Translations under genes and position numbers: made by a program | Shown: positions 1 through 40,333 of the stretch, piece after piece | Layout: each line of letters starts with the position of its first letter | Numbering within the stretch: position 1 is the first letter of the stretch | Source: Selaginella moellendorffii | Taxonomy: Eukaryota > Plantae > Lycopodiophyta | NCBI RefSeq assembly: GCF_000143415.4 | Contig: NW_003314283.1 | Span: 1,142,364 to 1,206,363, forward strand | DNA: 64,000 bases | Direction: 5' to 3' | The notes under the pieces: model-generated | What the model saw: the letters and a program-made list of their open reading frames with translations, nothing else | What the model was told of the DNA's origin: nothing | Database searches by the model: none

Positions 1-860
1 CTGTTCCCAATGTTGGGTGATGAGCTGCCCACTGGGAAGTCCAAGACTAAAGTGAACACGGACCGACAAGCGGGGTAGCTTGGTGAAGTGTTCAAGAGCC
101 GGCTTTAGTTCCCCTGGGAGATCAATTGGCCAATGCTCCCAGTCCAAGTGTGGGTGGCACTACCTACTTGGATACCTAGTGTGGCTCAACGGAACCTCAC
201 TCTAAGCCCACGGCTAGAGCACCCAAAGGCGGAAGGTGGGGAGAGTACCCACGAGGCCTATGGTATTCCGAAATGTTGCCCCAAGGTCTTAAACTGTGAA
301 AAGGAAAAGGAGCCGTCCTATAGTGTAGAGACCAAGGATGCAATCATGTGAGGAGGAAGTCCCAGACGACCGTGGGACTTAGTGGTTGGGCCTGTGAGCC
401 TTGATCCAGTGGCAGTGTTGGCGAACACGGCTATGGGCAAAAAGGGACTTGGTGGAGACCGGAAAAGGGATGTTGGGGAAGGCTATTCCCTATGTCTGTG
501 TGCATCCTAAGGACGCTAAAGAGTGGATTTGGGATGATCACTCATGGACGGATGGCCTAGTCTTTGAGAAACGGGACTGTAATGTAGGTGGTGTCAGACC
601 ACTGGTGTGACCAAGGTGATTGGGCATGGCCTCAACGTAATGGGCTGATATGTCGGTGGTACCTTGGGGTGTCGATCATGGGATCGGATACGTAGAGCAC
701 TTGGACCAAGTGCAAAAGTTGAGTGGCATGGATGCCATTCTTGGGGCTGGCAAGCCCCAAGTTCGGTATTGGACTTATGGAGGTTGTGAATGAGACTCCT
801 CCAAGTGGTCGGAGGTATGGTTAAGTGACTAAAGTAGAATGGAAAATTTAGTTGCTTACA
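1..860 (+). repeat. 5' LTR (truncated by the window edge)
   Basis: Direct repeat of 5735-6601 with scattered substitutions and one ~11-bp indel; ends in CA and is followed by the PBS. Confidence 0.92.
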
Positions 861-863
861 ATT

Positions 864-874
864 TGGTATCAGAG
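864..874 (+). other. Primer-binding site complementary to the 3' end of initiator tRNA-Met
   Basis: TGGTATCAGAG, 3 nt after the LTR end; canonical plant iMet PBS. Confidence 0.9.
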
Positions 875-3349
875 TTGTTCCTTAGTCCGGCTTTTATTGG
901 TGCTCAAGTATATCACTATTGATATTGGAAACGGAAGGTCCTAGAAGTGGGCCTATCCTTGAGGAGTAGCATGTTGAGAGGACATGGCTCTCCACTCAAG
1001 TTCATGCGTGAACATGGGCACGATGTGGTGGATAGAAAAGGGGCCAATAAGGGAATGACTTTGGGATCTTGGGAATAATATAAGGTTTCCCTCAGAGAGT
1101 TGAGGATGTGATCCGGATGAGCGGTTGACTCAGCAAACTGGCTAAGGTAGTTGTGGTAAACAACTATAGTTGGTATCACGGGAAAGATAGAGGCTCCAAA
1201 ACAATAAAGGAGTCACAAAATTATCCTCGCATAATTGAGGCTAGTGTTCATGAATTTGAGACCGAAATTGATGACCGTGAGAAGTGAAGTACGGATGAGG
1301 ACACGAGTCCTTGAAATGGTAGCCGAGGCTACCTTTTATAAATGCTGGAACAACCCAAGGAGTTGGGGGTGTACTTAGAGGATGAGTTGGTATTCTTATC
1401 ACATGGACAAGTGGTCTTAAAATGCAAAAGGTTGCCCCAAGAGAACAAATCAAGTGTCGGAGTAACAATTGGAAAGATGGTTCTTGTGAGTAGAACTTGA
1501 ATACAAGAAGTTGTATTTCAGTGAGCTGGCACCTTAAAGGTAGGACCTCATGGGTCATCAGATGACAAAGTCCAAAAAGCTAGATGACTCAAATAGAGTC
1601 AAGGAATAATACTAAAGGATTGATGGAAGCATTTGGATTGAGGTGTGTTGTACCCCACGAAGGATGGGGGGAATCATAAGATCCAAGTATGAGAACAGAG
1701 GGTATTTTATTGATGGCAGAATGTGCCATACTAAAGTCGTGGGAAAGGTGTTCCTAGAAAAAGCAACTTTGGTGCAGAGTTGTGTGCGAACACTATGGTG
1801 TAGTGCTAACGGATAGTTGACATGAGAAACAACTAGGTTAATTCTGGCAAAGACCTAGACACAAGTGCAAAGTGTCATAAAGGCAGACTCATGGAGCTGA
1901 TGGTGTAGAGACACCAAATGGGCCAAGGTGTGATACCTTGAGGTTATATTGATGGGTTCATAAGAACCCCTTGCCAAGGGAATCCCAATTTAAATGGGAA
2001 TGGCATAGTCTAAATTGAAAAGCATGTGGTAGAGTGTAGTAACCTAGATAATGATGAAAGTGTGGAAGCACCAACAATGAGTTGTAGGGCTTGACAACTA
2101 TGAGGCAACTAAGTAAGAGGTGCAAGATAATTGGTTAAACGGATAGAAGGTAGCTACCTAAAATTTCTTAATGGCATAAGGAAGTTAGATATACCCTTAC
2201 GGGGGATAAATTGCTTATGTTGCAATATAGTGAGTCAATGTTGTAAAAGGAAATGCTCATTGTCAAGAAGGCTATCATTGGGACACCCAAACACTCTAAA
2301 ACACCAGGAAGTGGTGTTTGGTGTTGCAAGGGCATTAGATAAGGCCCAAGGGACTAAGTCCCTAGCGAATGATGAATAGGAAGTGTTATCCAAATGTCTA
2401 AGGTTCTGGAGACGGGAGAAATCTGTCTACCCGATTTGGATAAAGCAAAAAATGGGATTTTGGCAAGGCTAGTGATGGGCATATAGAGGCCCATAAGTAG
2501 CAACATTAATCCCGGTGCGTGGGATTATGAGGTGAGCATGCCCAGATTAAGGAACCACTCCCTAAGCTATTGGGTAAATTCATCCCTATGAATACTTGCT
2601 AAGGCATAGTAGAAGGTGCAAAGCTATCTTTTTAGTTTGGAGGAGAATAAGCAAAGGAAACATATAAGGCCAAAAAGTAAGTAGTATTGAGATGGAATTG
2701 AACCATAAAAATTGAAGGGCATAACTGACAGTGGTTATGCAAGTTGGGAGTGGAGAATCAAGAGGGTGCTCGAGGATGTTGTTACTAGCAACCGCAGTGC
2801 TATGGAGAGTCTAAAATGTGAAATTATCCATGTTAGACGATATAGTGAGTAAGGAGCTTGCAAAGGAGAAGCCTTAGCAAGCTAAGGAACAGAGTTCCAT
2901 GAAGGTTCCCAAAGACAATTCTAAGTAGATAAGTACCTAGAAAGCTAAATGTAAATGGTTCCTAAAGTGCGCAAAATTAGAGTGGCGCAGCAGAAGCATG
3001 GTCTTGAAGCTGGCCATGAGGCGAGGCTATCAAAGTTGGGGAAGTATTTCCCAAGTGTTCAAAGAAAGGGCTTTGAATGAAAGTCGATGGTTAGGACTAT
3101 CACGCTTATGCATGAACTATGTTACGGTGGCCGGATGACTTACTAAGTGAGATTGGCAAGTCAGGGGAACAAATCCCTAGTCAAAGGTGCTAACTTCAAA
3201 AGGGATGGCCCATGGGGCCAAGCATGGAAGAATCTATGCATGATCACATACTTGTCTAGTGAGAGGGCTTGGCAGTGCGGAGGAACTAGGTTCCTAAGCT
3301 GTGATCTATAGTGCGCTTTAAATATAAATTGGTGCAACGACATGGGGAG

Positions 3350-3830
3350 TCACGCCAGGCATCTTGGATGATGCCTTCTGTAGATGCATATACGGAGGTT
3401 GGGTTCGAGTCCCGACCCTCTAGTGCTTGGGTTCAAGTCCCAAATCACTAGGGCGTGGTGATGGTTTGGAATATGAGGACATTCATTTTTCGGTGGTCAT
3501 GGACTCTCAATGAGGAGACTGGTTTGGGCACACTGCCAAGCGAGGGATGCCTTGGAGTCATGATGCACGGTTAGATTGCTTAGTATGGCTTGGCAATCTA
3601 ACTTGAACACTTTGGTGCGAGTGGCACCAAGGACGTGGTGAATGAGATAGGGATATCCAGTCTCAGTTGCTATGGACCCTTAGCCAGAAGGGCTGGCTTG
3701 GGTGCACCACCAAGTGTGGGGGATGCCCTCGGGGTCATAGTGAACAACTTCAAGGTCTGGAAGATCTAGTACCTATTGGCAAACCTGTTAAGGTGCCAAA
3801 GTTGGATCACTAGGTGGTCTTATGGCTAAA
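3350..3830 (+). ncRNA. Predicted structured RNA domain inside the retroelement (five-way junction, two four-way junctions, hairpins)
   Basis: Hand-folded abutting helices, detailed in findings; covariation between the two four-way copies. Confidence 0.6.
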
Positions 3831-5129
3831 AAAAAGGACAAGGTCCTTGCGAGGTTAAGAGATAAAGTTCCTAATTCAAAAGTGTTGATTTGAACTATTG
3901 ATGATGGTGTGGCTTAGTCAAGGTAACCAAGTGGGAAGAATACCTAAGGGAAAGAATTATGTTAATGTGATGGCATAATAAGTCTGAGAAAAGTAGTCTC
4001 TATAAGAGATCCAAGGGAGGGTCTCAAAAGTGGGGCCATGGATAAAGCCTACAGTAGAAAATGTTAAAGAAACATACTAAGGGTGAACACCCTCTGGACT
4101 TGGCAAAGTAAAGTGTTTGCTATGGAACCGAAAGGAAACCTCGAAAATGGAGGTAGTGATTCTATGTTGCTGGGGGCAACAATCAAGGATAGGAGCAAAA
4201 GACTAGTGGCTAAGAAAAGACCCATGGGAATCATGGGAAAGAATCTAAATGGCAAAGTTAGGCCGAGAACACTAATGTGTTGAGTGCTAATGGATTGTGA
4301 AAAATGCAATATTTCCCCAATGATGGATTCCCAACCACTCCGATTTGGCGAAAGTGGAAGCTTCAAGAGGGGCAGCGTCAAGGTAGCTAAATAATAAGGT
4401 CGGGGGCAGCCCTAGCACCAATTATGATAACTGGAACTTAGTGCCAAAAGTGGCACGATGTCGATGAGAGGATGATAGTGCCCTCAAGTAAAGAACTTCC
4501 TAGGATGGGGAAGTGGAGTTGCACCATGTGCAACGTAAGGTGTTGGAGACACTTAGGAAATTGACTCTGAGAAGTCAAAATTAAAAGTTCTAAAGTGCAA
4601 AGGTTATGTCGATGGAATCTAAGACTACACGAGAATGAGTAGTGGAATTGAGTTAGAAAAGGTGTCTCTAACGGGTTTAGCGAAAACTGAACCAATAAAA
4701 GGGAGTAAACCACCCCAGGTGGCCGAATGAGTCTCTATGTTGGAGAGACTATGCTCCTTAAAGGATGGATAAGGCATGATGAGCTTTCGCTATCAAACCA
4801 TAGACAAATATTAGCCAGGTGCCAAGGATGGAAACAGTAATAAAAGGGTTTACCGTTCAATGAGGACATCGAACTTTGTTTATGGGTGGTGGAGTTGTGA
4901 GACACAAAATCCTTAGGCCCCAAAGTGGAGCCAAAAGGGCGCCATGTGGTAGTGGCTGAAGCAAAAGCCAAACGAGCGTAACACGCTTGGACTAAAAGCT
5001 CCGACTTGAAAGGTCAAGAGCGAGAGTGGAACTCCCAATAAAGTGCTCGAGGAATGAGCACGAAGCAAGCAATAAAAGAGGCTCTAAAAAAGGGACCCAA
5101 AAGGACTAACACATGACATGTGGAAGTGT

Positions 5130-5607
5130 CTGAGATAGACTTGAGATGGAGTCTGAGATGGGGTCCAAGATGGAGTCCGAGATGGAGTCCGAGATGGAGT
5201 CCGAGATGGAGTCCGAGATGGAGTTCGAGATGGAGTCCAAGATGGACCGAGATGGAGTCTGAGATGGAGTTCGAGATGGATCCGAGATGGACCCGAGATG
5301 GACCCGAGATGGAGTCTGAGATGGACCCAAGATGGAGTCCGAGATGGACCGAGACAGAGTCCGAGATGAGGTCCGAGATGGACTCGAGATGGAATCTGAG
5401 ATGGAGTCTGAGAAGGACCCGAGATGGAGTCTGAGGTCAAGACCGAGACAAGGACCGAGACCGAGATCAAGACCCAGACCGAGACCGAGACCGAAATCGG
5501 GACCGAGACCGAGACCGAGGTTGAGGTCGAGACCGAGCCCGAGCCCAAGTCCGAGTCCGTGTCCGAGTCCGAGTCCGAGTCCGAGTCCGAGTCCGAGTTT
5601 GAGTCTG
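5130..5607. repeat. Minisatellite gradient: (GAGATGGAGTCC)n, then (CCGAGA)n, then (CCGAGT)n
   Basis: Directly visible tandem 12-mers followed by 6-mers, just upstream of the PPT. Confidence 0.95.
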
Positions 5608-5686
5608 AAAGGGTAAAAGCCCAAAGCGTTCATCTCCTAGACCCTAGGGGGTTTGGTGAGCTCCAAAAGTATAGTAGGGGGAGGAC

Positions 5687-6601
5687 TGCAGTGGAGCCAG
5701 TTTGGCCAAGAAAGGCCAGTTTGGCTTAGGAAGGCTGTACCCAGTGTTGGGTGATGAGCTGCCCACTGGGAAGTCCAAGACTAGAGTGAACACGGACCGA
5801 CAAGCGAGGTAGCTTGGTGAAGTGTTCAAAAGCCGGCTTTAGTTCCCCTGGGAGATCAATTGGCCGATGCTCCCAGTCAAAGTGTGGGTGGCACTACCTA
5901 CTTGGATACCTGGTGTGGCTCAACGGAACCTTGCTCTAAACCCACGGCTAGAGCACCCAAAGGCAGAAGGCAGGGAGAGTACCCATGAGGCTCGCGTAAG
6001 GCCACGGTGTTCCGAAATGTTGCCCCAAGGTCCCAGACTGTGAAAAGGAAGAGGAGCTGTCCTATAGTGTAGAGACCAAGGATGCAGTCATGTGAGGAGG
6101 AAGTCCCAGACGACCGTGGGACTTAGTGGTCGGGCTTGTGAGCCTCGATCCAATGGCAATATTGGCGAACACGGCTATGGGCAAAAAAGGACTTGGTGGA
6201 GACTGGAAAAAGGATGTTAGGGAAGGCTATTCCCCATGTCTGTGTGCATCCTAAGGATGCTAAGGAGTGGATCTGGGATGATCACTCATGGACAGATGGC
6301 CCAGTCTTTGAGAGACGGGATTGTAATGTAGGTGGTGTCAGACCACTGGTGTGACCAAGGTGATTGGGCATGGCCTCAGTGTAACAGGCTGATATGTCGG
6401 TGGTACCTTGGGGTGTCGATCATGGGATTGGACACGTAGAGCATTTGGACCAAGTGCAAAGGTTGAGTGGCATGGATGCCATTCTTGGGGCTGGCAAGCC
6501 CCAAATTTGGAATTGGACTTATAGTTGTGAATGAGATTCCTCCAAGTGGTCGGAAGTATGGTTAAGTGACTAAAGTAGAATGGAAAATTTAGTCACTTAC
6601 A
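5687..6601 (+). repeat. 3' LTR (~915 bp, TG...CA)
   Basis: Preceded by the PPT; matches 1-860. Confidence 0.9.
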
Positions 6602-6719
6602 CCCGAGAGGAAGTTTGAGGTCGAGTCCAAGATGGACCCAAGATCATCAATCATACACTGTGATCTTCCTTGGAAACCACAAAATAATCAAACTCCATCG
6701 ATCCAAAGCATTGACAGGC

Positions 6720-6929: not shown

Positions 6930-7195
6930 TAGTGTCAAACTCGATTTCCTTCTCCACTGGATTCGACGAATTCCCCTGGAAAGCCACACTAGTAGAGTTA
7001 GCGAAAAGAAAGAGAGAGAGAGGGATAGAGTGGGATTTTATCATGAAAGCGTGAACATCAGCCAGCAGAGCCTGTCACTTCCAAAAAGAGTAAACGAAAA
7101 TCGCAAGTTCACAGCAGCAATGTCCTGGATTGTTGCATTGCGCAATCGATCTCTTACAACCAGGTTACTAATCACTTGACTTGGATACCAGGAAT
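6930..7195 (-). pseudogene. Inverted, intron-containing fragment of the neighbouring PRMT10 gene
   Basis: Reverse complement of ~9765-10055. Translates YPSQVISNLVV...NATIQDIAAVNLRFSFTLFGSDRLC versus YPGQVIGDPVVV...NATLQDIAAVKSRFSFTLSGSDRLC. Retains the intron 3' end (ACTAGTGTGGCTTTCCAG). Confidence 0.88.
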
Positions 7196-7880
7196 GCCGC
7201 CACCGCCGCATGCTATCAAAAAGGTTCATTCACAAGTCCAGGTCTACCAAGAACATAAATCATGTCTGAAAACACAAAATAATCAAACTCCATTGAACCA
7301 AGCTGGAGTGGCTCAATGCTGTAAGAATGCACACATAAATGTTACTTAGTCCTGACTAACACCCTCCAAATTGAGAACGTAAAGGAGAGCCTTGGATGCC
7401 GCGAATGGGCATATGCTGTGTCTCTGGTGGGCATCAAATTCATTATGATTTGTCAAAAATGTTAGTTAAGGATGGCAAGCATGGCATTCCACATCACTCC
7501 GTAGCGATACGGCATCGATTCCAACAGCTTCCTTGTCGTCAACCAGGCGAGGGTGTGTCATGTTTGACACAATACCCCACGTGGAACATTAGTGCCTTGC
7601 TCGTGATATAAGATACCAGGTCATCTGGTCATGGAGATTCCCAGCCTGGGCATATGCTGTGAGCAGAATCGTCCATCTATGAGACCAAGTCCGCCTGTGG
7701 CATCTCTCTAAGTGTGCTGTCCAAAAACTCTATATTCTGGGGATGGGAATATGCTCTAAGCAATCTCATTCCAAGAGACAATGTTCTCTCATTCATTGCA
7801 TCAACGATCCCTTTGGCCGATGCCAGATGCCCATCCTGGGAATACCCCTGAAGCAGCTAAGTCCATGTGGGCATATGACT
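7195..7880 (-). pseudogene. Further PPR gene debris
   Basis: Minus-strand LFDSMRRWRHSW and TAYAHSRH motifs. 7265-7400 duplicates 6670-6820; 7648-7760 is an inverted match to 11545-11640. Confidence 0.6.
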
Positions 7881-8052
7881 GTATCTTATCCGCCACTGTG
7901 CCTTGGCACGTGTCTCAAGTACATTGCACGTCTCCTAGCCCACGTTATTCATGCTAATAGTATAAATATATGTCTTCCTCCACTCTATATACATACCACT
8001 CTCTGTAGCTATCTTTGCAGCAGCACAGTTTAGTCCCTGCGTAGCAAATCCC

Positions 8053-8349
8053 ATGGAGAAGGCAGCAAAGATTGCTTTTATTCTCACACTCATAGTTGCA
8101 ATTTCATTTGCCTCACTTGAGTTCACCAATGCTATTGAGATAGCTCCCAACACAAAGTTTGTGCCGGCTTCTTCTCTTCTCTCATACTTCAGGAACCTGA
8201 AAGAGATGGAGTGCATGCCGCACTCTCAATGCTGCCCCGACTCCAAGCCCTGCCCATCAGAGGACCAGGAGTGTAAGATCTGTGCCAAAATTTATCCTGC
8301 ACTGTGCTTCTGCACAGACAAATCTGGGCTTAACAAGCTGATGCTGTAA
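8053..8349 (+). CDS. Bowman-Birk-type serine protease inhibitor precursor (98 aa, 8 Cys)
   Basis: N-terminal signal peptide. CKICAKIYPALCFCTD matches the BBI inhibitory loop (compare soybean BBI second loop CICALSYPAQCFCVD); predicted P1 is Lys. TATAAAT at ~7961. Confidence 0.85.
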   Translation: MEKAAKIAFILTLIVAISFASLEFTNAIEIAPNTKFVPASSLLSYFRNLKEMECMPHSQCCPDSKPCPSEDQECKICAKIYPALCFCTDKSGLNKLML

Positions 8350-8736
8350 TCTGGAGGTATGACTTAATTCGTGTTTCTTTATACTCAGTGCTAATCATTT
8401 GTGTGTCCTAGAAGATGGACAACTTGATGCACACCTTCTGATCTAAAGAATGGAGTAATAAATGTCTTTATGTGCTAAAACTATGTGATTTTGGGCATTT
8501 TTCGCTTTGCAAGTGATCCATTAGTGGTTATTTCTTTGATAGCCACGACATGTACTGTGTAATTCGCTACTGGTAATAATAAAAAAACTCTCAAGCTTGT
8601 TTGAGAGTTGACAACGACAAGTCTTAACGGTGACGTGTCAGCACGGCATGATGACGTGTCTGTACGGTTTGGGTCTAGGGTTTTGGATTTTTTGTCTATG
8701 TCTTCTAGGGTTTTACAGGCAGCGGTGGCGGTGAGG

Positions 8737-10328
<1,592 letters not shown>

Positions 10329-10470
10329 AAACTAAGATTTTCCTGATTCTTTCAAGCAAAACTATAGACATTGACACTCACGAAAGGGTACCACCTCTTC
10401 ATGACTTAATATTAACTATTCCTTTTTCATACTATTCCTCCTGAGCTCCAGGTACTGCTGCGATCCAAAA

Positions 10471-10843
10471 ATGGCACTTTTAGGGGACAACACCCAGCCT
10501 TACACCATAGATCATCCTAAATCTTTCACGAAGAACAATGATATAGATATATCGTTGTTCTTTGTGAAAGGTTCAATGAAGTATGGTTACACCATAGATG
10601 ATCTAAACGTTGCTAGAAGTTTGAGGATCAAGCTTCCCTCTCGAACATACTTTCGAGTTGCGGCGCGTGAAAATGATGAAATTCCCACTGGTTTGCATCT
10701 GGATGTCAAGGACTTGGAGCCACAGCCAGCTCGCACTCCGTTCTATATCAGTGAAGACTGGTACTTTTTGTTTGACTGATGCTAATGACAATACAATCAA
10801 GTCAGGCCGGATGCTGCCAGACGAAAAGCTTGTTGTCAAGTGA
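10471..10843 (+). other. Small orphan ORF, possibly frameshifted
   Basis: ATG-initiated 102-aa ORF that continues ~22 codons in another frame after a T run at ~10764. No family recognised; part of it is duplicated at 12075-12152. Confidence 0.3.
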
Positions 10844-11076
10844 TTACAAGAGGGAAGTAGCAACAAAGACCAAACAGAGCGAGCGAGCTTGATTAAATGC
10901 CTTATACATAACTTTGAATGGAAGATATATAAAATATAAACGTCTGTATTGAAGCAGAAATTTCCCCGACTCTGAAACTCAAAAAAATAATAAAAAAATG
11001 CAAACATCCCAAAGGGAATCCCGCACACAAAGGAAAACAACAAAGAAACACGAGATAAGTTAAGCATACCTCCAGA

Positions 11077-11374
11077 TTACAGCATCAGCTTGTTAAGCCC
11101 AGATTTGTCCGTGCAGAAGCACAGTGCAGGATAAATTTTGGCACAGATCTTACACTCCTGGTCCTCTGATGGGCAGGGCTTGGAGTTGGGGCAGCATTGA
11201 GAGTGCGGCATGCACTCCATCTCTTTCAGGCTCCTGAAGTATGAGAGAAGAGAAGAAGCCGGCACAAACTTTGTGTTGGGAGCTATCTCAATAGCATTAA
11301 TGGACTCGGAGTGAAGCAAATGCAAATGCAACAGTGAGTGTGAGAACAAGAGTGATCTTTGCTGCCTTTTCCAT
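11077..11374 (-). pseudogene. Second Bowman-Birk inhibitor copy with a +1 frameshift in the signal-peptide region
   Basis: ATG at 11374; 298 bp versus 297 bp for copy 1. An extra base at ~11308 (ctcCgag) gives ...ASLRVH*. The mature region is nearly identical to copy 1. Confidence 0.85.
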
Positions 11375-11539
11375 GGGATTTGCTTTGCGAAGACTAAACT
11401 GTGCTGCTTGCAAAGATAACTAGAACCTAAAAATGGTCTGTCTATAGAGTGGAGGAAGACATGTATTTATGCTATTAGACAAGCCTTGCATGAATACCAT
11501 GGGCTGGCTGTTATTGTGATCGTGGGCTTCGCTTTTGAT

Positions 11540-12152: not shown

Positions 12153-12228
12153 AAAAGAAAAATTTGCACGAGGTTAAACACTGCCTTTGTAAAAATTTGC
12201 ACGTAACAGTGATTTTGTCAAAAAGGCT

Positions 12229-12299
12229 TGCACTGCCCGGGAATCGAACCCGGGTCTGTACCGTGGCAGGGTACTATTCTACCACTAGACCAGCAGTGC
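12229..12299 (-). tRNA. tRNA-Gly(GCC)
   Basis: GCACTGCTGGTCTAGTGGTAGAATAGTACCCTGCCACGGTACAGACCCGGGTTCGATTCCCGGGCAGTGCA forms a full cloverleaf with A and B boxes; T5 Pol III terminator at 12220-12224. Confidence 0.97.
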
Positions 12300-12341
12300 A
12301 TCATGTTGGCAATGTGAGGTTTATTCTAACAAAACCGCGCT

Positions 12342-12553: not shown

Positions 12554-12589
12554 CCTCTTCCTCCATTTTTGCTGTCTTTGTTGTTGTTT

Positions 12590-12671
12590 GGGCAGAGGAT
12601 GATAGATTCTTGATGGGTAATTTGCGGCTGACCACATTGGTGTGATGCCTCACCTTGGAGACCTGATGCCC
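12590..12671 (+). ncRNA. Intronic double-guide box C/D snoRNA (U16 + U55 specificities; snoR15-like)
   Basis: Terminal stem GGGCA/TGCCC; box C-like AGGATGA; D' CTGA 12628-12631 preceded by GGGTAATTTGCG (antisense to 18S CGCAAAUUACCC); C' GTGATGC; D CTGA 12663-12666 preceded by TCACCTTGGAGAC (antisense to 25S GUCUCCAAGGUGA). Confidence 0.9.
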
Positions 12672-12764
12672 ATTTGAATGAATGAATCCTCTCGAGAGAG
12701 ACCCTATAAATCTTGATCGAAACGCTGTGAACTTTTGTCTTTCAGGGCTCTCTGATCTTTGGAG

Positions 12765-13034
12765 ATGGGCGATGGCTCTGTTTTGAGCCGAGTGAGCAGC
12801 GGCATTGCCGAATCGAGGCGCGCAGTGAGCAGCACTTGCGTGTTTGGAGGCCGAGTGCTGCGCAGCACGGGCAAGGCGGCATGGATTGCAGGCACAACCT
12901 TTTTGCTGCTGGTTGTGCCACTTATTTTTGAGGTGGACAGGGACCAGCAGCTGCAGGAGCTTGAGTCTCAACAAGCGACGCTGTTGGGTGGTGCGGCCCA
13001 GCCTGCTGCTGCTGCTGCGGCTGCGGCCAAATGA
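12765..13034 (+). CDS. TOM9: Mitochondrial import receptor TOM9 (plant TOM22)
   Basis: LRSTGKAAWIAGTTFLLLVVPLIFEVDR.QQ..ELE.QQATLLG matches plant TOM9; 5'-UTR intron 12442-12745 (GT-AG). Confidence 0.93.
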   Translation: MGDGSVLSRVSSGIAESRRAVSSTCVFGGRVLRSTGKAAWIAGTTFLLLVVPLIFEVDRDQQLQELESQQATLLGGAAQPAAAAAAAAK

Positions 13035-13779: not shown

Positions 13780-14943
13780 GAGTTTTAGTTGCTGCACATG
13801 CACAATTTCTGGAGTATTGGCCTGTTAAATATCATGCCGAACCTTATAAACTTGTGGTCCAACTTGCCGCAACACTCGATACGGTCCTTTTTACTGCGCA
13901 AGAAGCCCTTTAGATAAACCATGTATTGTAAGATGGGGAAAACGGACTAACACAAAATCATCCACTTTGTACTCCGCAAGTGGATGATGATGGGAATTGT
14001 AGCGCCATTGTTGTCCCACTTGTACACAGCCTAAGTGTTCAACAGACTCTGTTCGGACAAGTGGAAGAATACTCGTCAAATACTGATCACATGACCTAGC
14101 ATCGATAGCTCGTGGCAACCGCAAAGGTAAACCCAACTCCGTTGGTAATATTGGATCATGACCATATAGGAGTTTATATGGTGAAGCACCAATAGAACTC
14201 TGCACCCCTGTGACATATGCATACCGAAGAGACGGCAAATAACCATCTCAATCCGAATGTTGAAAGTTCACATATTTCGCAATCATCTTTTTAAATGTCC
14301 GAATGAGCCGTTCTACCAGACCGTTTGATTGTGGATGATAAGCACTCGTGAAAGTGTGGCGTATCCCCAACCGAGACGTCAAGACATGAAATGCCTCAAC
14401 CATAAATGCAGGACCATTATCCGAAAGAATCCGCTCTGGACAAGAATACTGGAGCACCACTTGATTGAGGAGGAAGTATCCAACAGTAGTTGCAGAGGCG
14501 CTAGCAAGAGCACCAACTTCCACCCAACGAGTTATGTAGTCAGAAGCAATAATAACATACTCATTGTTAGCAGTCGACCGTGGAAAAGGTCCTATAAGAT
14601 CAAATGCCACCAACTCAAACGAACAGGAAACTGCAATTGACTCTAACCGTCCTTCCGCAACACGAGGGGGAGTATTACGAGCTTGGCACCAAACGCAGCT
14701 ACGCATATACCGGATAATATCACATCGCATCTCCAGCCAATTAAAAGACCGGCGCAGCTTCTCAGTTAGACAACAATGTCCCATATACCCACCTTGAATT
14801 GGAGAATCATGGTAGGCATGGAGAAACCGCAGAATAAAGATAGAAGGCACCACCAGCCATAAATGATCATCAGGATCCGTCCCCACAAAATAAAGAAGGC
14901 CATCTTCAAAGCGATATTGAGAATGTAAATGCAGGAAAGGCAA
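13780..14943 (-). pseudogene. Gypsy integrase (degenerate zinc finger, DDE core, GPY motif), disrupted
   Basis: YHDSP...C.WC, AFDLIGPFP, ILSDNG, AYHPQSNGLVER, KGPYRVLRQVG; in-frame stops. Confidence 0.9.
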
Positions 14944-14994
14944 GTCATCAGCAAGTGATGCAAGATTCTCAAACCCATCTCGAAGCCTTCAAAT

Positions 14995-17112
14995 TCATGG
15001 CTTAATTTTTTTAGCCTCGCAAACCTCATCAAGAGAAGGTAGATCTTGCTCTACGCCTTGTGGACACTGAACGTCAAGAACAGCAACTGTCGAGGGCATA
15101 GAATCCTCGTCTAGAAAATCCACAAATGCTGGAACAATAGGTTCATCAGAAACATGAGAAATGAGTGGAGAAGGAAGAGGAGCTCGAGAAAGGGCATTAG
15201 CATCAGCCATAGAACTCCCTGGGCGATGAACAAAATCATAAACATATATCTGAAACTTCAAAGCCCACTGAACAGTATGACCAACTAGGTTCTTCCGCTT
15301 CAATAATGAAGTAATAATAGCATGGTCACCTTCAAGTAACGTCCAAGAACCATGTAGATATGCATGAAGTTTCTTGAAGTTTTTAGACTGCTGCTAAACA
15401 CTCCTTCTCTGTCGTGGAGTAGTTTATCTCTGCTAGTTGTAATTTATGACTTATATATACAATGGGATGGCGGTGATCAGGCACACTCGAGCTCTCTTGC
15501 ATTAACACACCTCCAAGACCAATGTCAAAAGCATCCACGTGCAAAACAAAATGTCGAGTGTAGTTAGGATATGCCAAAACTGGAGGAGTTGTCAATAGCT
15601 CTTTGAAATCCCCGAATGCCCGCTCACAATCCGGAGACAAGATGAAAGATGACGTTGATGATTTCAGCAATGCTCGCAACGGTGCAGTACGATCAGAAAG
15701 ATGATCCATAAAACAACCGAGATACTGCACCTTGCCTAAGAAGCGTTGCACATCATTCACTTCGGAGTAGGGAACTTCAGAATAGCCACAAGTTTGTCAG
15801 GATCAACTTGCAAACCCTCACGAGAAATATGGTACCCAAGATAAGTTGTGTCCTTGGACCCAAACATGCACTTCGACCGCTTCAGCTTTAAACCAACGTC
15901 ACGTAGCCAATCCAACACTTTACAAACATCACAAAAGTGCTCCTCCTACGTCCCCTCTGAGTGGATCAAGACATTAGCAATGAAGTCAACAGTCACCTCC
16001 GGCATATTGCAAAGAACCTCGTCCATCATCTGCTGGAAAGTTGCTGAAGCATTGTTTAAACCAAACGGCATCACCAAAATCTCATACAAACTAAATGGTG
16101 TATGAAAAGCAGTCTTTGGAATATTTTCTTCGGCCATCGATACTTGCCAGTACCCAGAAGCAAGATTTAACTTGGTGAACCAACGACTTCGCCCCAAATG
16201 ATCCAAGAGATCAGCAGTGTGAGGAAGAGGGTACACATCTGGGATCGTCACTTCCTTTAACGGATGATAGTCGATACAGAAACGAATACTCGTATTAGGC
16301 TTCATCACAAGATGAGATTCACATGCCCAAGGATTCCACAACTTCTGAATAACACCCTTCTCCAACATCTCCTTGACGTTTGCACATAAAATCTTGATTT
16401 CCTTGGGCGACCGACAACGAACAAAAACCTTGATTGGATGAGCATCCCCGGTTGGAATCGGATGACGTGTGGCAATCTTGGCCCCAGATGATAGGTCAAA
16501 GTCAAAGAGATCAAAATACTCCTTCATGAGCCGGTCAACCATTGCAACACAAAGATCGTCGGAGGGATCGAAAAAGGGAAGAGCAGAATAAGATGGAAAT
16601 ATAAGAAGAAATAGTGGGGGAACAAAAGTAATGGAAGCAGAAGTAGAAGTAAAGGGACGAAGAGGTACGGAAGTGAGAGGAATGGATGAAATATAAGGAA
16701 GTATGAGAGAAGGGGGAGAAGCCTCAAAGTTATATTTGGCATGATTGCGTTGCAACCAATCTATACCAAGAATGAGGTCAAAAGCTTGACTCAACACCAC
16801 CCGCAACGACTGCAACTCAAGCTCGAGATCGCCCACACGTACAACCAGGTCCGCCTTATCCCATGCACATGCATGTGTATGGTTGTTGCCATAAAAAATG
16901 AAAATTGGTTCCACCGCACGACGCAAGTGTAAATGGTAACGTGTGGCAATAGGTCGAGCAATAGAAGATAAACTCAAACCTGTATCAACCAATACGAAGA
17001 GAATAATATGAAACCTCTTGTTATAAAAACGAGCTTGGAACATAAACACTAGATGAACCGGTGCCAAGTGAACCCCTTGATAATACTCCCGAAAGAAAGA
17101 TAGAAGGGTCAT
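14995..17112 (-). pseudogene. Gypsy protease-RT-RNase H, frameshifted
   Basis: LVDTG protease, LILGIDWL, RFCIDY, MPFGL.NA.ATFQ, catalytic Y/FxDD decayed to FIAN, HVDA.DIGLG.VL, NYSTTEKECLA, ADANALSR. Confidence 0.92.
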
Positions 17113-17116
17113 TGAC

Positions 17117-18068
17117 TTATTTGCGCAAGGTCCCTCCGTTACTTGCGCGACTCTTCATTTCCCGGATGCATTTTGGTGTCCAAACCTTCCACGGCAGCAG
17201 CACCAATGGGACGTTGCTGACGCCAAGGTCTCCAGCCAGGAAATGGAGGTCGCCAATCCAGAAAACGCCGACAATGCCGATAAGTATGACCAACTTCATC
17301 ACACGCCCAGTAACGAACATCACAGCTATGACCACGTCCTCGCCCTTGTCCTTGGACTCAAGTAGCAGCAGCATCAACCTCCATTGGAACAGGACCATCA
17401 CCCATAGGAAGTGGAGCTGAAGGACGTGTAGTGAGAAGTGGAAGAGGCGACGTCTCATAACGTTGTGCCAAGTGAAGAGCATCATCAAGGGTGGCGGGAG
17501 CAAGTGCATGCACAAGTCCGACAAGATCTTGATGAAGTGCTAGCCACAACATTCCTAGCTTGATCCGCTCCGACATATTTGGCTTCGCATGAAATAAAAG
17601 ACTTTGGAAACGAATGCCAAATTGCATCATCGACTCAGATGGCCCTTGGCGAAGACGATGCAATTGTTGGAAGGCATCATCACAGTCATCGGTATGTCCG
17701 AAGGTGCGTTTGAAAATGTCCGGAAGGACACTCCAATCCCCATGAGTGGCTGCGCTCAACCCATTGTACCACTGCGCCATCCCTTGAAGACACGTGGGAA
17801 ACTCACGCAAACGTTGAGCATCATCCCAAGAATAATATGTGGCAATCACTGTGAAGTGATCGAACCAATGGTACACATCATCCCCAGGATTCCCGCGAAA
17901 AAACTTTGGCTGAACGCAAGGATTAGCACCAAGAGTAGGAGGAGTTGTACCACGTGCCATGCATGCCGCCATCAATTGAGTTTGGTTGTTCAATTGCAAC
18001 TGCATAGCATCAAGCAATTGTACCAATTGCTGCTCCAGAGTCAAAGGAGGAGATTGCTGATCTGCCAT
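17117..18068 (-). pseudogene. Gypsy gag
   Basis: Capsid-like ORF 17358-18068 (PKFFRG, LRQG..ES, PMEVD) followed by a decayed Cys/His zinc knuckle. Confidence 0.85.
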
Positions 18069-24685: not shown

Positions 24686-27152
24686 TTAGATCGAGAATCT
24701 ATCGACGATGTCCCAAAGGACGCTCCTCATCTTGTCCAGCGACAGCGGCCTGTAGAGCACCGCCACAAATCCCAGCTTGAGAAGATGCTCTCTCGCGCTC
24801 GCGTCCGCGTCGGTGGTAAGCGCCACCAGCAGTGGCCTCTCGTTGATCGGGACCTCCTGGAGCTCCGCCAGGAGATCCAAGCTCTCCTGCTGCTGCCAAG
24901 GCGGGCTCGATGACAAGTCGAGCACTGCTACTCTGAACCGCGGCCCCGGAGGATGGCGGACGAGTTGCAAGCACTGCTGGATGGACATGGCCTCGGTAAC
25001 GTCGCAGCCCAGTCGGAGCATCACTCCTCTGGTCATGACGTTGCCGCCAGTTTCACTCACCAGGAGGAGTTTGAGTCCGCTCAAGCTCATCGATCCTTGC
25101 AGTTTGTGCTGCTGCTGCTGCTGCTGTAGTTGTAGTTGCTGTTGCTGATCGGGTTTGTCTGACTTTCCGAGTTTCACGAGGATTGTCACGGTCGATCCCT
25201 TGCCGAGGCCCTCGCTCTCGATCCAGATGTGGCCCCCCATCAAGCTTACAAACCTGGAAAGAGCGTGATGAGAAGCTTTTTCTTTATTCTAAAGAAGCTA
25301 GCAGCTTTTACCTTTTGCATAGTGCTAAGCCCAGGCCTGGACCGCTCCGCTTGTTGACTTGGACAAACTTTGTGAAGAGCTTGGGGATGTCTTGGGAGCG
25401 TAGGCCAATGCCAGTGTCCTTTACCTGCCGTTGCAAAGATGCCGCGGTTAAGAAAAAAGTTTTGTGTGGGTGGAGAGCTTACTTGTATTCTAATGTAAAA
25501 GTGAGAATCGCCCTGTGTTGGAAGGAACTCTGGTGCTCTAGGATCTCGCGAGTACTCCGGCCTCTCCATGCAAGCGGACACAGTGATACTTCCATCCTTC
25601 GTGAACTTGACGGCATTTCCTATGATGAATAGAACGATCTGCAAGAGACGCTTCTCGTCTCCAACAGCAAATTCCGGAAGGTCGGCAGCCAAATTCATGG
25701 TGATGTAAAGCTTCTTCACAGCAGCTATTGGCTTCACAAGGTTGTAGACCTGGACAACAACACAATTAAAAATTGAAACAACAAAAAGAGAGAGACCGGA
25801 GACAAACCTCTCGGAAGAGAAACAGAAGGTTGAATGGAGCAATCTCGAGTTGGAAGCTGCCATCTTCGAGCTTGGAGAGGTCCAAAACATCGTCTATAAG
25901 CTTGGCCAAAAGCCTGCTATTGCGTAGGATGGTCTCCACCATCGACCGTTGCTCCGCATTGAGCTGGCTGTCCTGGAGGAGCGACGAGAGAGTTATGATC
26001 GTATGCATGGGAACACGCATCTCGTGATTCATGACAGCCAGGAAATCGTTGCAAGCGGACACGGCAGTCTCTGCCTCCTGTCGAGCAGCGTCCAGCGCTA
26101 TGTTTTGCTCCACTAGCAAGTCTCGGGACCGTATGGATTCCTCCAATATTGCCGCGTGGGAGAGAGCGACGGCAACCTGCAAAGCAAATCACCAACTTAG
26201 AGGAAAAAGTAAAGAAAAAGGAATCAAATAAGAGACCACTTGCCTGGTCGGCGACGACTTCCACAAGCTCAAGCTCGTGAATGCGCCACCTTCGCGCGCT
26301 ATCTGACGGCAATATCAAAACCAGCAGCGCATACGGACCTTTGGCCGGCTCGGGCCAGTCGACGATTGGAAAGTTCACCATGCGCAAGAGCGGCACGCGC
26401 ACAGCAACAGCATCTCCAGAAATGTATTTCCCAGCGTGTGTTCTTGTCATGGCCACAGGGCTGCTGGACGGAATGACCACCGCGCGATTGCTGCTGAAAA
26501 CCTGTCGCAGCGTTGGGTGGTGTATCGGCACGATCCCAACGTTGGCCTTGCTCAGCTGGCGAAGCGAGTGTGTGAGCTGAAGCTCGAGACCGTTTCTAGT
26601 CGGCATCCACAGCGTGCATTCTTCCAGAGCCAAAGCCTTCCCGAGCTCGACCAGCGTGGAGTTGAGAATGGTGTGCCTGTCTAGCGTGCTCCGGATCTCC
26701 TGCGTGAGCATTCTTACGTGCCGGCCAGCCTCTTCCTGCGTCCGGATGATCCCCATCTCCCTGTCCAGCTCGTCCGCCTTGTTCTTGAGGAAGAGCTCGC
26801 GGGTCTTGACGCTGAGCAAGTCGGGGATGATATGGACGAGCATGAGCGCTGTGGCGCACGAAACCACCGCTGTGAGAATTTTCGCGACTGTCATCACGGT
26901 CGCCATTGTTCTCGAGTGAGAGCCCAGCGTCCAGAGGCTGATGAAATGCGTAGCTCCACACAGGACGATGAAGGCACCAAACTGTACGAGCACCCAGCGG
27001 TATGGAAACAAGGCGGATTTCTTGACGAAGTAGATGAGCTCGATCGGAATGGAGAAGTAGGCGAGCGCAATGAAGAAATCCGCGATGTACTGGTACCGGA
27101 TGTGGATGTCATCGGACGACCACTGCGGCTCGATGATGCAGTTGCAATCCAT
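24686..27152 (-). CDS. ETR1: Ethylene receptor, subfamily I (ETR1-like): 3 TM, GAF, His kinase, receiver domain
   Basis: [22 protein letters not shown] (copper ligands), [13 protein letters not shown]-box, GDEKRL...GNAVKFT, G boxes, C-terminal receiver. Confidence 0.95.
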
Positions 27153-36038: not shown

Positions 36039-37490
36039 ATGTGCGCGGCCAGATTATCGATCAAGGGAGCGGCGGCATCGTCGTGTTCTCCAGATCAGGG
36101 AAAGCCGCTCCTACTGCCGCCTTCTTCCGGCTCGCATCATCGCCGGGAGAGATTCAAGATCCTCGCGGCCGCGGGAATCAGCGCCTTCTTGCTGCTGTCG
36201 CTCACATTCTCCCCTCTCTGGAGCCTCCACGCCAGGCATCGCCCCATCCTCTCGCGGACGAGCTCTTCCATTTCCTCCTCCGCCGCGACGACGCAGCAGC
36301 CCCGGCGCTCGTACGATGTGCTCCACTACACCGCACTGGAGGCCAGCGATGGCGACGAGAGGGATAGAATCCGGCAGCTCCTGGACGAGCGATCGTCGGC
36401 CAAGTACTACTGGCACCACGGGCGGGGCGGGCGTGGCAGGGTGGAGCTGGAGCACAGCGATGGCTACGAGCGGCGCCGCCCCACTCCCATCCGGAGGCTG
36501 CGAGATCGTCGGTGGACGCCGGATCTCTCCAATCCCAGGTACGCTCCCTACACCGGAGAATTCCGCCAGATGCTCCAGAGCTGGGCTCGCCGCAAGCGCT
36601 ACGATCCAGAGATCATGGCCGAGCTCCTTCCAGCGATCAAAGAGCCCATCGACCGCCACTACAAGAACTTATCCACCACCACCACCACCGAGGACGAACT
36701 AGTGATCCAAGAGCAAGCCCACCATCGCCACCACCACCATCACACCAAGGAGGATGACCGAGAAGGACACTTTGGCGACCAAAGAAGATCATCATCGCCA
36801 TCGCCATCACCATACCCGACGTGTGCCGTGGTTGGAAACAGCGGCGTCCTCCTCAACCGGACTTACGGCGCGCTCATCGACAGCTACCAGATGGTGATGC
36901 GCCTCAACAACGCAAAGGTGGCGGGCTTCGAGCGCTGGGTGGGATCCAAGACCACCATCTCCTTCGTCAACAGCAACATCGTCCACTCGTGCGCTCGCCG
37001 CCACCGCTGCTCCTGCCCCTCCTACGGCGACGCCGTCCCCACCGTCTCCTACGTCTGCCAAGTTGCGCACTTCCTCGACTTGGCCTACTGCCGCGCGCAT
37101 CGCCGAGCTCCGCTGCTCGTCACCGATCCCCGCTTCGACAGCCTCGCCACCCGGATCGTCCGCTACTACTCGCTCCGCCACTTCTTCCACACCACCGGGA
37201 GATCTTACGACGACTGGAACAAGCTCCACGACGGGACGCTCTTCCACTACTCGTCCGGGATGCAAGCGGTGATGCTGGCGCTGGGGATCTGCGACGAGGT
37301 GGGCCTGTTTGGATTCGGGAAGCTGTCCAATTCCACTCACCACTATCATACCAACCAGAGGACCGAGCTCGCGCTTCACGACTACGAGGCCGAGTATATC
37401 TTATACCGTGATCTCGTCCATCGCCCAGGTATGGTTCCTTTTCTTAATGAGTCTGGCCTGGCGGTTCCTCCTGTGAAGATCTTCCTCTGA
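36039..37490 (+). CDS. GT29 (sialyltransferase-like) glycosyltransferase, GALT29A-like, intronless
   Basis: Type II TM segment; sialylmotif L CAVVGNSGVLL...G..ID....V.RLN; S motif YSSGMQAVMLALGICD.V..FGF; HHY; HDYEAEY. Confidence 0.92.
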   Translation: MCAARLSIKGAAASSCSPDQGKPLLLPPSSGSHHRRERFKILAAAGISAFLLLSLTFSPLWSLHARHRPILSRTSSSISSSAATTQQPRRSYDVLHYTALEASDGDERDRIRQLLDERSSAKYYWHHGRGGRGRVELEHSDGYERRRPTPIRRLRDRRWTPDLSNPRYAPYTGEFRQMLQSWARRKRYDPEIMAELLPAIKEPIDRHYKNLSTTTTTEDELVIQEQAHHRHHHHHTKEDDREGHFGDQRRSSSPSPSPYPTCAVVGNSGVLLNRTYGALIDSYQMVMRLNNAKVAGFERWVGSKTTISFVNSNIVHSCARRHRCSCPSYGDAVPTVSYVCQVAHFLDLAYCRAHRRAPLLVTDPRFDSLATRIVRYYSLRHFFHTTGRSYDDWNKLHDGTLFHYSSGMQAVMLALGICDEVGLFGFGKLSNSTHHYHTNQRTELALHDYEAEYILYRDLVHRPGMVPFLNESGLAVPPVKIFL

Positions 37491-38854: not shown

Positions 38855-40333
38855 TCAGTGCCGCGTTGGAACGAACGCGAGGTGCTGGAGATGGTGGTGG
38901 TGGTGGTGGTGGTGTTGATGCGGGTGGATCGATCCACCGCCAAAGAAATCGTGCTGCTGGTGATGGCGCTGGAGCTGCGATGCTCGCGGATCAAACAATC
39001 CAAATTTCCCGGCCGCCAGCGCCGCCGCCACCGCGGTGGGCGACGATCCGGAGGAGCAAGACGAGAGCGGCGGCGAGGAGGCCGCCGCCGCCGCTACTCC
39101 CGCCGCCAGCGGCGATCCAGCGCCGCCACCGCTAGCGGCGGCGGCAGCGGCCGCCATGTAGCGCTGGACCTCCTTGGCTACCATGTCCTTCATCATCCCC
39201 AAGAGCCCATTGTTGCCACCATTGCCAGGAGGAGGAGAAGGAGCTCCTCCATCCAATCCTCCATCCAATCGCCCTTGCCGGGGCTGGAAGATCGGCGCGA
39301 GCGCTTGCGCCACCGCCGCCCGGATCGCGGCGCTCATCAATTCCACCGCGTCCTCGGCCCGGACGTAGCCGCTGGGCACGAACGCCGGGGCGGCATTCTG
39401 GAAGGAGGAAGGAGGAGGAGTGCTTGGCGGCGGCGGCGGAGGAGGAGCTGGAGCTCCAGGCTTGCTCGATTCCATGGTCGCCGCTGGGATTTGCCCCGGG
39501 AGAGAAAGGCTGAGCGATGTGAGTGGATCCGCCGCGCCGCCGGTGTTGGAGCTGGATTCCTCGCATGGATTGTAGCTGGCAAACGCGGACGCGCGGGGCA
39601 GGGGCTTGAAGATCCCATTGGCGGCAGCGGCGGCGGTGGTGGTGGTGGTGGCGGCGGTGGCGGTGGTGGTGGTGCTCGTGGTCGTGTTCTTGGGCGACAG
39701 CGCGTCCCCAAAATTCATCCTTTTCAAGCTCCGCGAATCCACCTCCCAATTGCTGCCATCCTCGTCGTCGTTGGACATGTCATTGCTGCTGCGCTTGAAG
39801 CTCGAGATCTCCTCCTCGTCGCTGTTCTTGACGAACTGGTGGATCTGGTGGTGCTGGCGATGATTGGCGTTCTCGTGCTCCATGCCGGCGGTGGCGGTGG
39901 CGGTAGCGTGGCTCTTCTCGCCACCGCTACCACCGCCACTGGCACAGCAGCGCCGCCGGAGAGTGGAGTTCCAGTGGTTCTTGATCGCGTTGTCTGTTCT
40001 TCCGGGCAAGAGGCGCGCGATGGTCGCCCACTTGTTCCCGTGCTGCGAATGCGCCTTGATGATGGTGGCGTCCTCGGCGGCGGTGAAGGGGCGGTGCTCC
40101 ACCTGGGGGCTCAGCTGGTTGCACCACCGCAGCCGGCACGATTTGCCCGATCGCCCAGCAATCCCCTTGCTGATGAGCGACCAATTCCTCGCGCCATACT
40201 TGTCCACCAGCTTCTGGAGCGCCGCGTCCTCCTCGGGGCTCCACGGCCCCTTGATCCTGTCCAGCTCCTCCGCCGATGCTCCGCCACTCCCACCACCGCT
40301 CTTGCCAAGCGCCATCGTGCACATCGCTCGCAT
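38855..40333 (-). CDS. Intronless R2R3-MYB, subgroup-22-like (MYB44/73/77 clade)
   Basis: [12 protein letters not shown]...[33 protein letters not shown]; S22 motifs [11 protein letters not shown] and MM.DMV.KEVQRYM. Confidence 0.94.

Follow-up and report, generated by a model that had tools for sequence, protein, structure and literature searches.

The locus and its host element

The window, a 64,000-nucleotide stretch of the Selaginella moellendorffii genome, carries at its left end an LTR retrotransposon of about 6.6 kb, and the RNA-like module under consideration lies in the interior of this element (Table 1). Beyond it lie TOM22, with a tRNA gene and a C/D box snoRNA just upstream, and, further along, the ethylene-receptor-like, GT29, R2R3-MYB and LRR kinase loci, which are ordinary plant genes. 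An exact match to the TOM22 protein (encoded at 12765-13031) led to scaffold GL377587.1 of assembly GCA_000143415.2, where the locus shows 100% identity to 2765-23034 of the window; this assembly is S. moellendorffii v1.0 in Kojima 2024. A degenerate Ty3/Gypsy element occupies the minus strand at 13891-18068, with a gag domain (PF03732), a reverse transcriptase ORF and an integrase (PF17921, PF00665); at the DNA level it does not resemble the first element, and there is no room for a 3' LTR before TOM22. A PRMT10-like gene lies between inverted repeats at 6938-8361 and 9819-11478, in which stretches of up to 243 nt match at 98%, and the 6.6-11.5 kb portion of the window has a 90-95% similar counterpart in the 9.5-kb scaffold GL377908.1, from which the retrotransposon is absent.

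The two LTRs were recognized as direct repeats in the same orientation. The 5' LTR is followed by TGGTATCAGAG, which we take to be the usual plant primer-binding site for the initiator tRNA-Met (compare TGGTATCAGAGC), and a purine tract precedes the likely start of the 3' LTR. The interior between them has no open reading frame longer than 115 amino acids outside a 12-nt tandem array at its 3' end, and a Pfam search with 34 stop-to-stop pieces detected no gag or pol families in it. Thus, the two LTRs, the primer-binding site, the purine tract and the gag/pol-free interior together identify a LARD-type non-autonomous element, in agreement with the original prediction that the module sits in a non-coding retroelement of this kind. 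The alternative raised in that prediction, namely that the region is decayed pol coding sequence, is ruled out by the silence of Pfam over the same 34 pieces. A repeat of the GAGATGGAGTCC type resumes right after the 3' LTR (6603-6648), as if the element sits in or beside the array of another copy.

Table 1. Features of the LARD, of its structured module and of the rest of the window
Feature	Positions	Strand	Remarks
5' LTR	1-860	+	truncated by the window start; ends ...TTACA; 92% identity to 5735-6601
Primer-binding site TGGTATCAGAG	863-873	+	complementary to the 3' end of initiator tRNA-Met
Non-coding interior, chain of short hairpins, purine-rich plus strand	861-5686	+	no Pfam gag/pol; GC skew +0.27
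Decayed upstream arm	3339-3344	+	GACATG here, GGCGTG in the majority; pairs with CACGCC 3351-3356
Closing stem, 5' strand TCACGCC	3350-3356	+	sequence, RNAfold
Hairpin 1, AGGCATC/GATGCCT	3357-3376	+	7-bp stem, loop TTGGAT (majority TTGGGT); -10.6 kcal/mol
Hairpin 2, TCTGTA/TACGGA	3377-3396	+	6-bp stem, 8-nt loop; U.G pair 3379/3394 is C-G in the family majority
Hairpin 3, T-arm-like, GGTTGGG[TTCGAGT]CCCGACC	3397-3417	+	loop TTCGAGT
Tandem 28-nt units	3399-3454 (3399-3426, 3427-3454)	+	abutting, 79% identity; give the twin T-arms
Hairpin 4, CTAGTG.TTGGG[TTCAAGT]CCCAA..CACTAG	3420-3451	+	T-arm-like inner stem within outer stem CTAGTG/CACTAG; loop TTCAAGT here, TTCGAGT in the family majority
Closing stem, 3' strand GGCGTGG	3452-3458	+	part of motif AGGGCGTGGTGA, repeated at 3630-3641
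TTTTT run	3486-3490	+	one of only two in the interior on the plus strand; 28 nt after the module
12-nt tandem array (GAGATGGAGTCC-like)	5129-5614	+	3' end of the interior
Purine tract AGTAGGGGGAGGA	5673-5685	+	precedes likely 3' LTR start at 5687
3' LTR	5687-6601	+	start inferred from the purine tract; homology with the 5' LTR from 5735 on
tRNA-Gly(GCC) gene	12228-12300	-	just upstream of TOM22
snoZ101-type C/D box snoRNA	12587-12674	+	66 bits; just upstream of TOM22
TOM22 gene	12765-13034	+	single exon
Ethylene-receptor-like gene	25917-27152	-	
GT29 sialyltransferase-like gene	36039-37490	+	
R2R3-MYB gene	38855-40333	-	
LRR receptor kinase gene	52420-55209	+	

A chain of short hairpins fills the interior

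The interior shows a characteristic structural pattern: counting perfect Watson-Crick stems with loops of 3-10 nt, we found 36 hairpins with stems of at least 6 bp in its 4.26 kb, against 6.5 in dinucleotide shuffles, and 72 against 21.4 when stems of at least 5 bp are admitted. Counts in the flank and in two control regions are at chance. Sliding windows of 110 nt point in the same direction, with a mean z of -1.04 on the plus strand and -1.31 on the minus strand of the interior and of 0 in the flank. The strongest fold signal of the interior spans 3350-3760, and the module at its 5' end is the densest patch of a hairpin-filled sequence, not an island in it. The hairpin chain as a whole is of greater note than the five-way junction that drew attention to the locus. 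Such a chain could originate from template-switch mutation or from selection for a compact, packageable RNA. Two further stretches deserve mention in their own right: 3466-3760, just 3' of the module, is folded as strongly as the module and carries internal repeats, and no other 110-nt window of the interior has, on either strand, a z as extreme as that at 2806-2915 (-4.7 and -5.7).

The fold of the module

The module was originally described as a closing stem that encloses four abutting hairpins, and all of these stems were found in the sequence where they had been placed. Folding of the 109 nucleotides with RNAfold reproduces the five-way junction of this copy exactly, as both the minimum-energy and the centroid structure (-53.2 kcal/mol), and the fold is unlike that of shuffled sequence (z -5.45, with 0 of 200 shuffles as good). 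The junction is retained in a 561-nt context (fold z -5.9), and five of the seven pairs of the closing stem, itself worth -11.5 kcal/mol, have probabilities of 0.92-0.97. The observation as such is confirmed as real and statistically strong.

The further claim that the G:U pairs favour the plus strand, i.e. that of the genomic RNA, had to be rejected. The reverse complement of the module folds with a z of -5.08, so that both strands fold equally well, and one of the three G:U pairs on the plus strand (3379/3394) results from a private C>T change of this copy. Across the interior the hairpin excess is equal on the two strands, and allowing G:U pairs adds none on either. The purine-rich character of the plus strand (GC skew +0.27) leads to a lower absolute energy there, for which selection at the RNA level need not be invoked.

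Twin T-arms and a tandem duplication

Both 7-nt loops match the T-loop/B-box pattern GGTTCRANNCC, as their original reading as tRNA T-loops had implied, and this pattern occurs seven times in the window against 0.8 expected. A T-arm with a 5-bp stem closed by G-C and a TTCRANN loop is present twice, as TTGGG-TTCGAGT-CCCGA and TTGGG-TTCAAGT-CCCAA. The presence of two such arms is explained by a 28-nt head-to-tail duplication, and in the family majority (see below) the loop of the second unit also reads TTCGAGT, by an A>G difference at 3435. The tails of the two units, CTCTAGTG and CACTAGGG, can be read from the sequence to pair with each other and so form the outer stem of hairpin 4; they look like two decayed copies of a palindrome, CACTAGTG, which we infer to be the ancestral form. 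In a minority of the family contigs a different spacer (about AAAGCAAGGC) lies between the T-arm units at 3424-3428, and the spacing of the twin arms hence differs among subfamilies.

A search for the twin T-arm pattern in metagenomes yielded 50 loci, all of them unrelated to the module and without homology past the pattern itself; they represent duplications of bacterial tRNA 3' ends and T-arm-like satellites or tandem arrays. Some metagenomic contigs contain arrays in which the T-arm core GGGTTCRAGTCCC recurs in as many as 15 units of 21-30 nt, and in many other matches a bacterial tRNA gene is followed by a second copy of its own 3' end. T-arm segments appear, from these examples, to be often duplicated in tandem.

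The family and the closing stem

Members of the family were sought as contig pieces with at least 80% likeness to positions 3000-3900 (901 nt), and the majority was described site by site. Each of two DNA runs of one sample contributed about 12,000 pieces, making the family very abundant, and the run of a second organism a further 231. Where this copy and the majority differ, the majority mostly has G for A (34 places) or C for T (15 places), which indicates decay of this copy through G>A and C>T changes, in line with the 8% divergence of its LTRs. Among the best-supported sites listed, beside which the stretch has 82 weaker ones, those within the module are 3368 in the loop of hairpin 1, 3379 in hairpin 2 and 3435 in the loop of hairpin 4, and T>C at 3379 converts the U.G pair of hairpin 2 to C-G. 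The majority sequence would thereby have cleaner hairpins and identical T-loops, which favours a role. The hairpins belong to the family and not to this copy alone.

The status of the closing stem is different. Its 5' strand has a second potential partner in the arm immediately upstream, which is decayed in this copy; in this arm and just before it, the majority letters are C at 3337 and G at both 3340 and 3342. A 30-nt sequence from other copies forms an 8-bp local hairpin of -13.0 kcal/mol, as against -11.5 for the closing stem, and this 8-bp version is present in some copies. In most copies the array can, to judge from the majority, be read as five abutting hairpins, and the five-way junction is favoured in this copy only through the two G>A changes that disrupted that hairpin. 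A closing helix of at least 7 bp is found by chance in 0.9% of random flank pairs (per block), which is not compelling, given the many hairpin blocks that might have been so enclosed.

Summed contig depth, a crude measure, is likewise uneven over the module. It is lowest at 3310-3371, which includes the 5' closing strand and hairpin 1 (8-10 thousand in run X2), and highest at 3372-3495, which includes hairpins 2-4, the 3' closing strand and about 40 nt more (120-327 thousand in X2); the latter values are 3 to 30 times those of the neighbours, and runs X1 and X4 show the same trend. Thus, the junction is not carried as one unit, its 3' two-thirds being present in more copies or families than the sequence around them, and the depth suggests that 3372-3495 may be shared more widely than neutral filler would be. 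Of our results, this is the one that speaks for a special status of the T-arm hairpins. Judged by the family data, the closing stem is not a secure feature of the family, and its five-way closure most likely arose by accident in this one decayed copy. The original prediction of a functional RNA module therefore divides into two: a strongly structured, non-coding sequence with family-wide hairpins is upheld, but a discrete five-way functional unit is not supported, in view of the competing local hairpin, the low depth of the 5' third, the duplication, the folding of both strands and the similar hairpins throughout the interior.

Searches for known RNA families, further copies and expression

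As originally stated, the module does not belong to a recognized family: a search of Rfam over it returned no family at the gathering score or E 10, and in particular no tRNA (RF00005). The sole near-match was BMV UPD-PK1 (E = 9), and no Rfam ribozyme model, including the hammerheads of retrozymes, matched the module. ARAGORN reported no tRNA at its default settings and made only weak calls at an 80% threshold; deletion of either T-arm did not expose a tRNA detectable by this program. A pattern search found no B box in the LTRs. In about 12% of one RNA-seq run (9.2 million records), from a type of library that would miss small RNAs, a single read pair of less than 90% likeness was recovered. 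Searches for further copies with the spurious ORFs of the interior gave no homologues and no exact entries, and those for Selaginella retroelements with the reverse transcriptase and gag of the Gypsy element of the window had their top matches in other organisms. When TOM22 and the PRMT-like proteins were used to locate LARD copies, only the window itself and the LARD-free paralogous or allelic scaffold were found.

Mechanistic interpretation

The above observations lead to the proposal, which we prefer and hold with middling confidence, that the module is the densest stretch of a hairpin chain filling the non-coding interior of an abundant LARD, that its T-arm was doubled, that its closure is due to decay and that any role of the hairpins is a collective one. 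Under this proposal, the 28-nt head-to-tail duplication doubled a single T-arm-like hairpin, which may be a piece of a captured tRNA or resemble one by chance, and the remnants of the CACTAGTG palindrome in the unit tails pair to create the outer stem of hairpin 4. With its local partner destroyed by the two G>A changes, TCACGCC would have become available to the downstream GGCGTGG repeat. If functional at all, the hairpins may act collectively by keeping a protein-less genomic RNA compact and recognizable for packaging and reverse transcription by a helper. We do not think that they constitute a tRNA-docking junction or a ribozyme. Two things count against the preferred reading: the greater contig depth over 3372-3495, and the identity of a 13-mer to the generic tRNA T-arm, which is unlikely to be due to chance.

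The most serious competitor, although we consider it somewhat unlikely, is that hairpins 2-4 with their twin T-arm loops are a selected cis-acting RNA common to the LARD and its autonomous helper, such as a packaging signal for Gag/nucleocapsid or a tRNA mimic that recruits a tRNA-binding protein of the host or the element, with the five-way closure being dispensable. It would account for the peak of summed depth exactly over 3372-3495 in three runs, for the cleaner pairs and identical T-loops of the majority and for the location of the strongest fold signal of the interior at 3350-3760; however, the twin arms are explained by plain duplication, both strands fold equally well, similar hairpins occur along the whole interior and the RNA run offers just the one poorly matching read pair in the portion searched. 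A discrete five-way junction that works by docking of its two T-loops, either with a tRNA elbow or with one another, or that acts as a ribozyme, is very improbable: the fold is indeed very stable in this copy, but a local hairpin rivals the closing stem in others, the junction is not conserved as a unit, it matches no ribozyme or RNA family and its architecture is unlike that of known interdigitated T-loops.

The T-arms also raise the prospect that the module is what is left, inside the LARD, of a Pol III-type unit of tRNA origin, whether SINE-like or Helenus-like. Its two perfect B boxes could, at the DNA level, bind TFIIIC or even drive a small transcript, about 140 nt long and terminated by the TTTTT run. 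In its favour are two exact B-box matches, a cloverleaf-like order of arms behind a 7-bp acceptor-like stem, the position of one of the interior's only two T5 runs 28 nt downstream and the occurrence of tRNA-derived non-autonomous LTR elements in S. moellendorffii (Helenus-1_SMo, PMC10886601). There is also an A-box-like sequence, AGGCATCTTGG, 45 nt upstream of the first B box, but its two mismatches fall at usually invariant positions and the interior has 130 sites of equal quality. Further, neither the lengths of the arms nor the spacers between them resemble those of a tRNA, Helenus-1_SMo has a different T-arm, the would-be 5' half falls in the part matched by the fewest copies, and no tRNA is recognized by Rfam, even at E 10, or by ARAGORN at its default settings, in the latter case even with one T-arm removed. 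We hence regard a Pol III relic as improbable.

A bolder version of the cis-acting alternative, which we advance with considerable doubt, is that the twin T-arm array (approximately 3372-3495) is a tRNA mimic or packaging element common to a chromovirus and the parasitic LARDs of Selaginella, kept by selection across families, and that the success of the LARD, with its thousands of copies, depends on it. How helpers recognize LTR retrotransposons devoid of proteins is largely unknown, and a short RNA common to helper and parasite, if true, would provide a testable handle on this question. A mimic of the tRNA T-arm, if true, would also enlarge the short list of retroelements known to imitate tRNAs.

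Comparison with known systems

Two kinds of RNA present themselves for comparison with the T-arms. Interdigitated double T-loops, as in RNase P and stem I of T-box RNAs, form when a bulge and a loop of one helix interlock as a stacking platform; they come from a single helix, whereas the two loops of the module cap separate hairpins. tRNA mimics, such as the tRNA-like element of HIV-1 and the 3' tRNA-like structures of plant viruses, are experimentally supported and copy either the anticodon arm or the complete L-shape. The module resembles them in being part of a parasitic RNA that imitates a portion of a tRNA; it differs in being a putative mimic, and of the T-arm only, twice.

Among retroelements, the Helenus or TRIMp3 group, including Helenus-1_SMo, comprises non-autonomous LTR retrotransposons with a tRNA-like sequence and a B box (Kojima 2024, PMC10886601), features that recur in the element described here. 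In Helenus, however, a whole tRNA-like unit with A and B boxes lies in the 120-bp LTR of a 325-bp element (PMC10886601), whereas here there are only T-arm-like hairpins, which lie between the LTRs of an element of about 6.6 kb, and the LTRs themselves have no B box; the module is thus not a member of this group. Kinship with Helenus-1_SMo was also rejected directly: apart from the difference in the T-arm, the window contains no match to a 22-nt piece of its tRNA-like LTR.

For the hairpin chain, a precedent is presented by template-switch mutations, which create and keep hairpins during replication (PMC8794818, PMC5453318). As in the hairpins ascribed to this process, the interior has many short, perfect and strand-symmetric inverted repeats free of coding constraint. 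Accounts of the mechanism concern DNA replication, both in rRNA and in genomes at large, and its extension to the reverse transcription of a LARD would be our own. A further parallel is with other LARDs (large retrotransposon derivatives), for example Sukkula, which are said in PMC7215508, citing Kalendar et al. 2004, to specify conserved RNA folds. LARDs have in common with this element the LTRs, a primer-binding site for tRNA-Met, a purine tract, a non-coding interior of several kb, a high copy number and a predicted conserved RNA secondary structure. The present element differs from them in its lycophyte host, in an interior formed as a chain of dozens of short perfect hairpins and in its two look-alikes of the T-arm.
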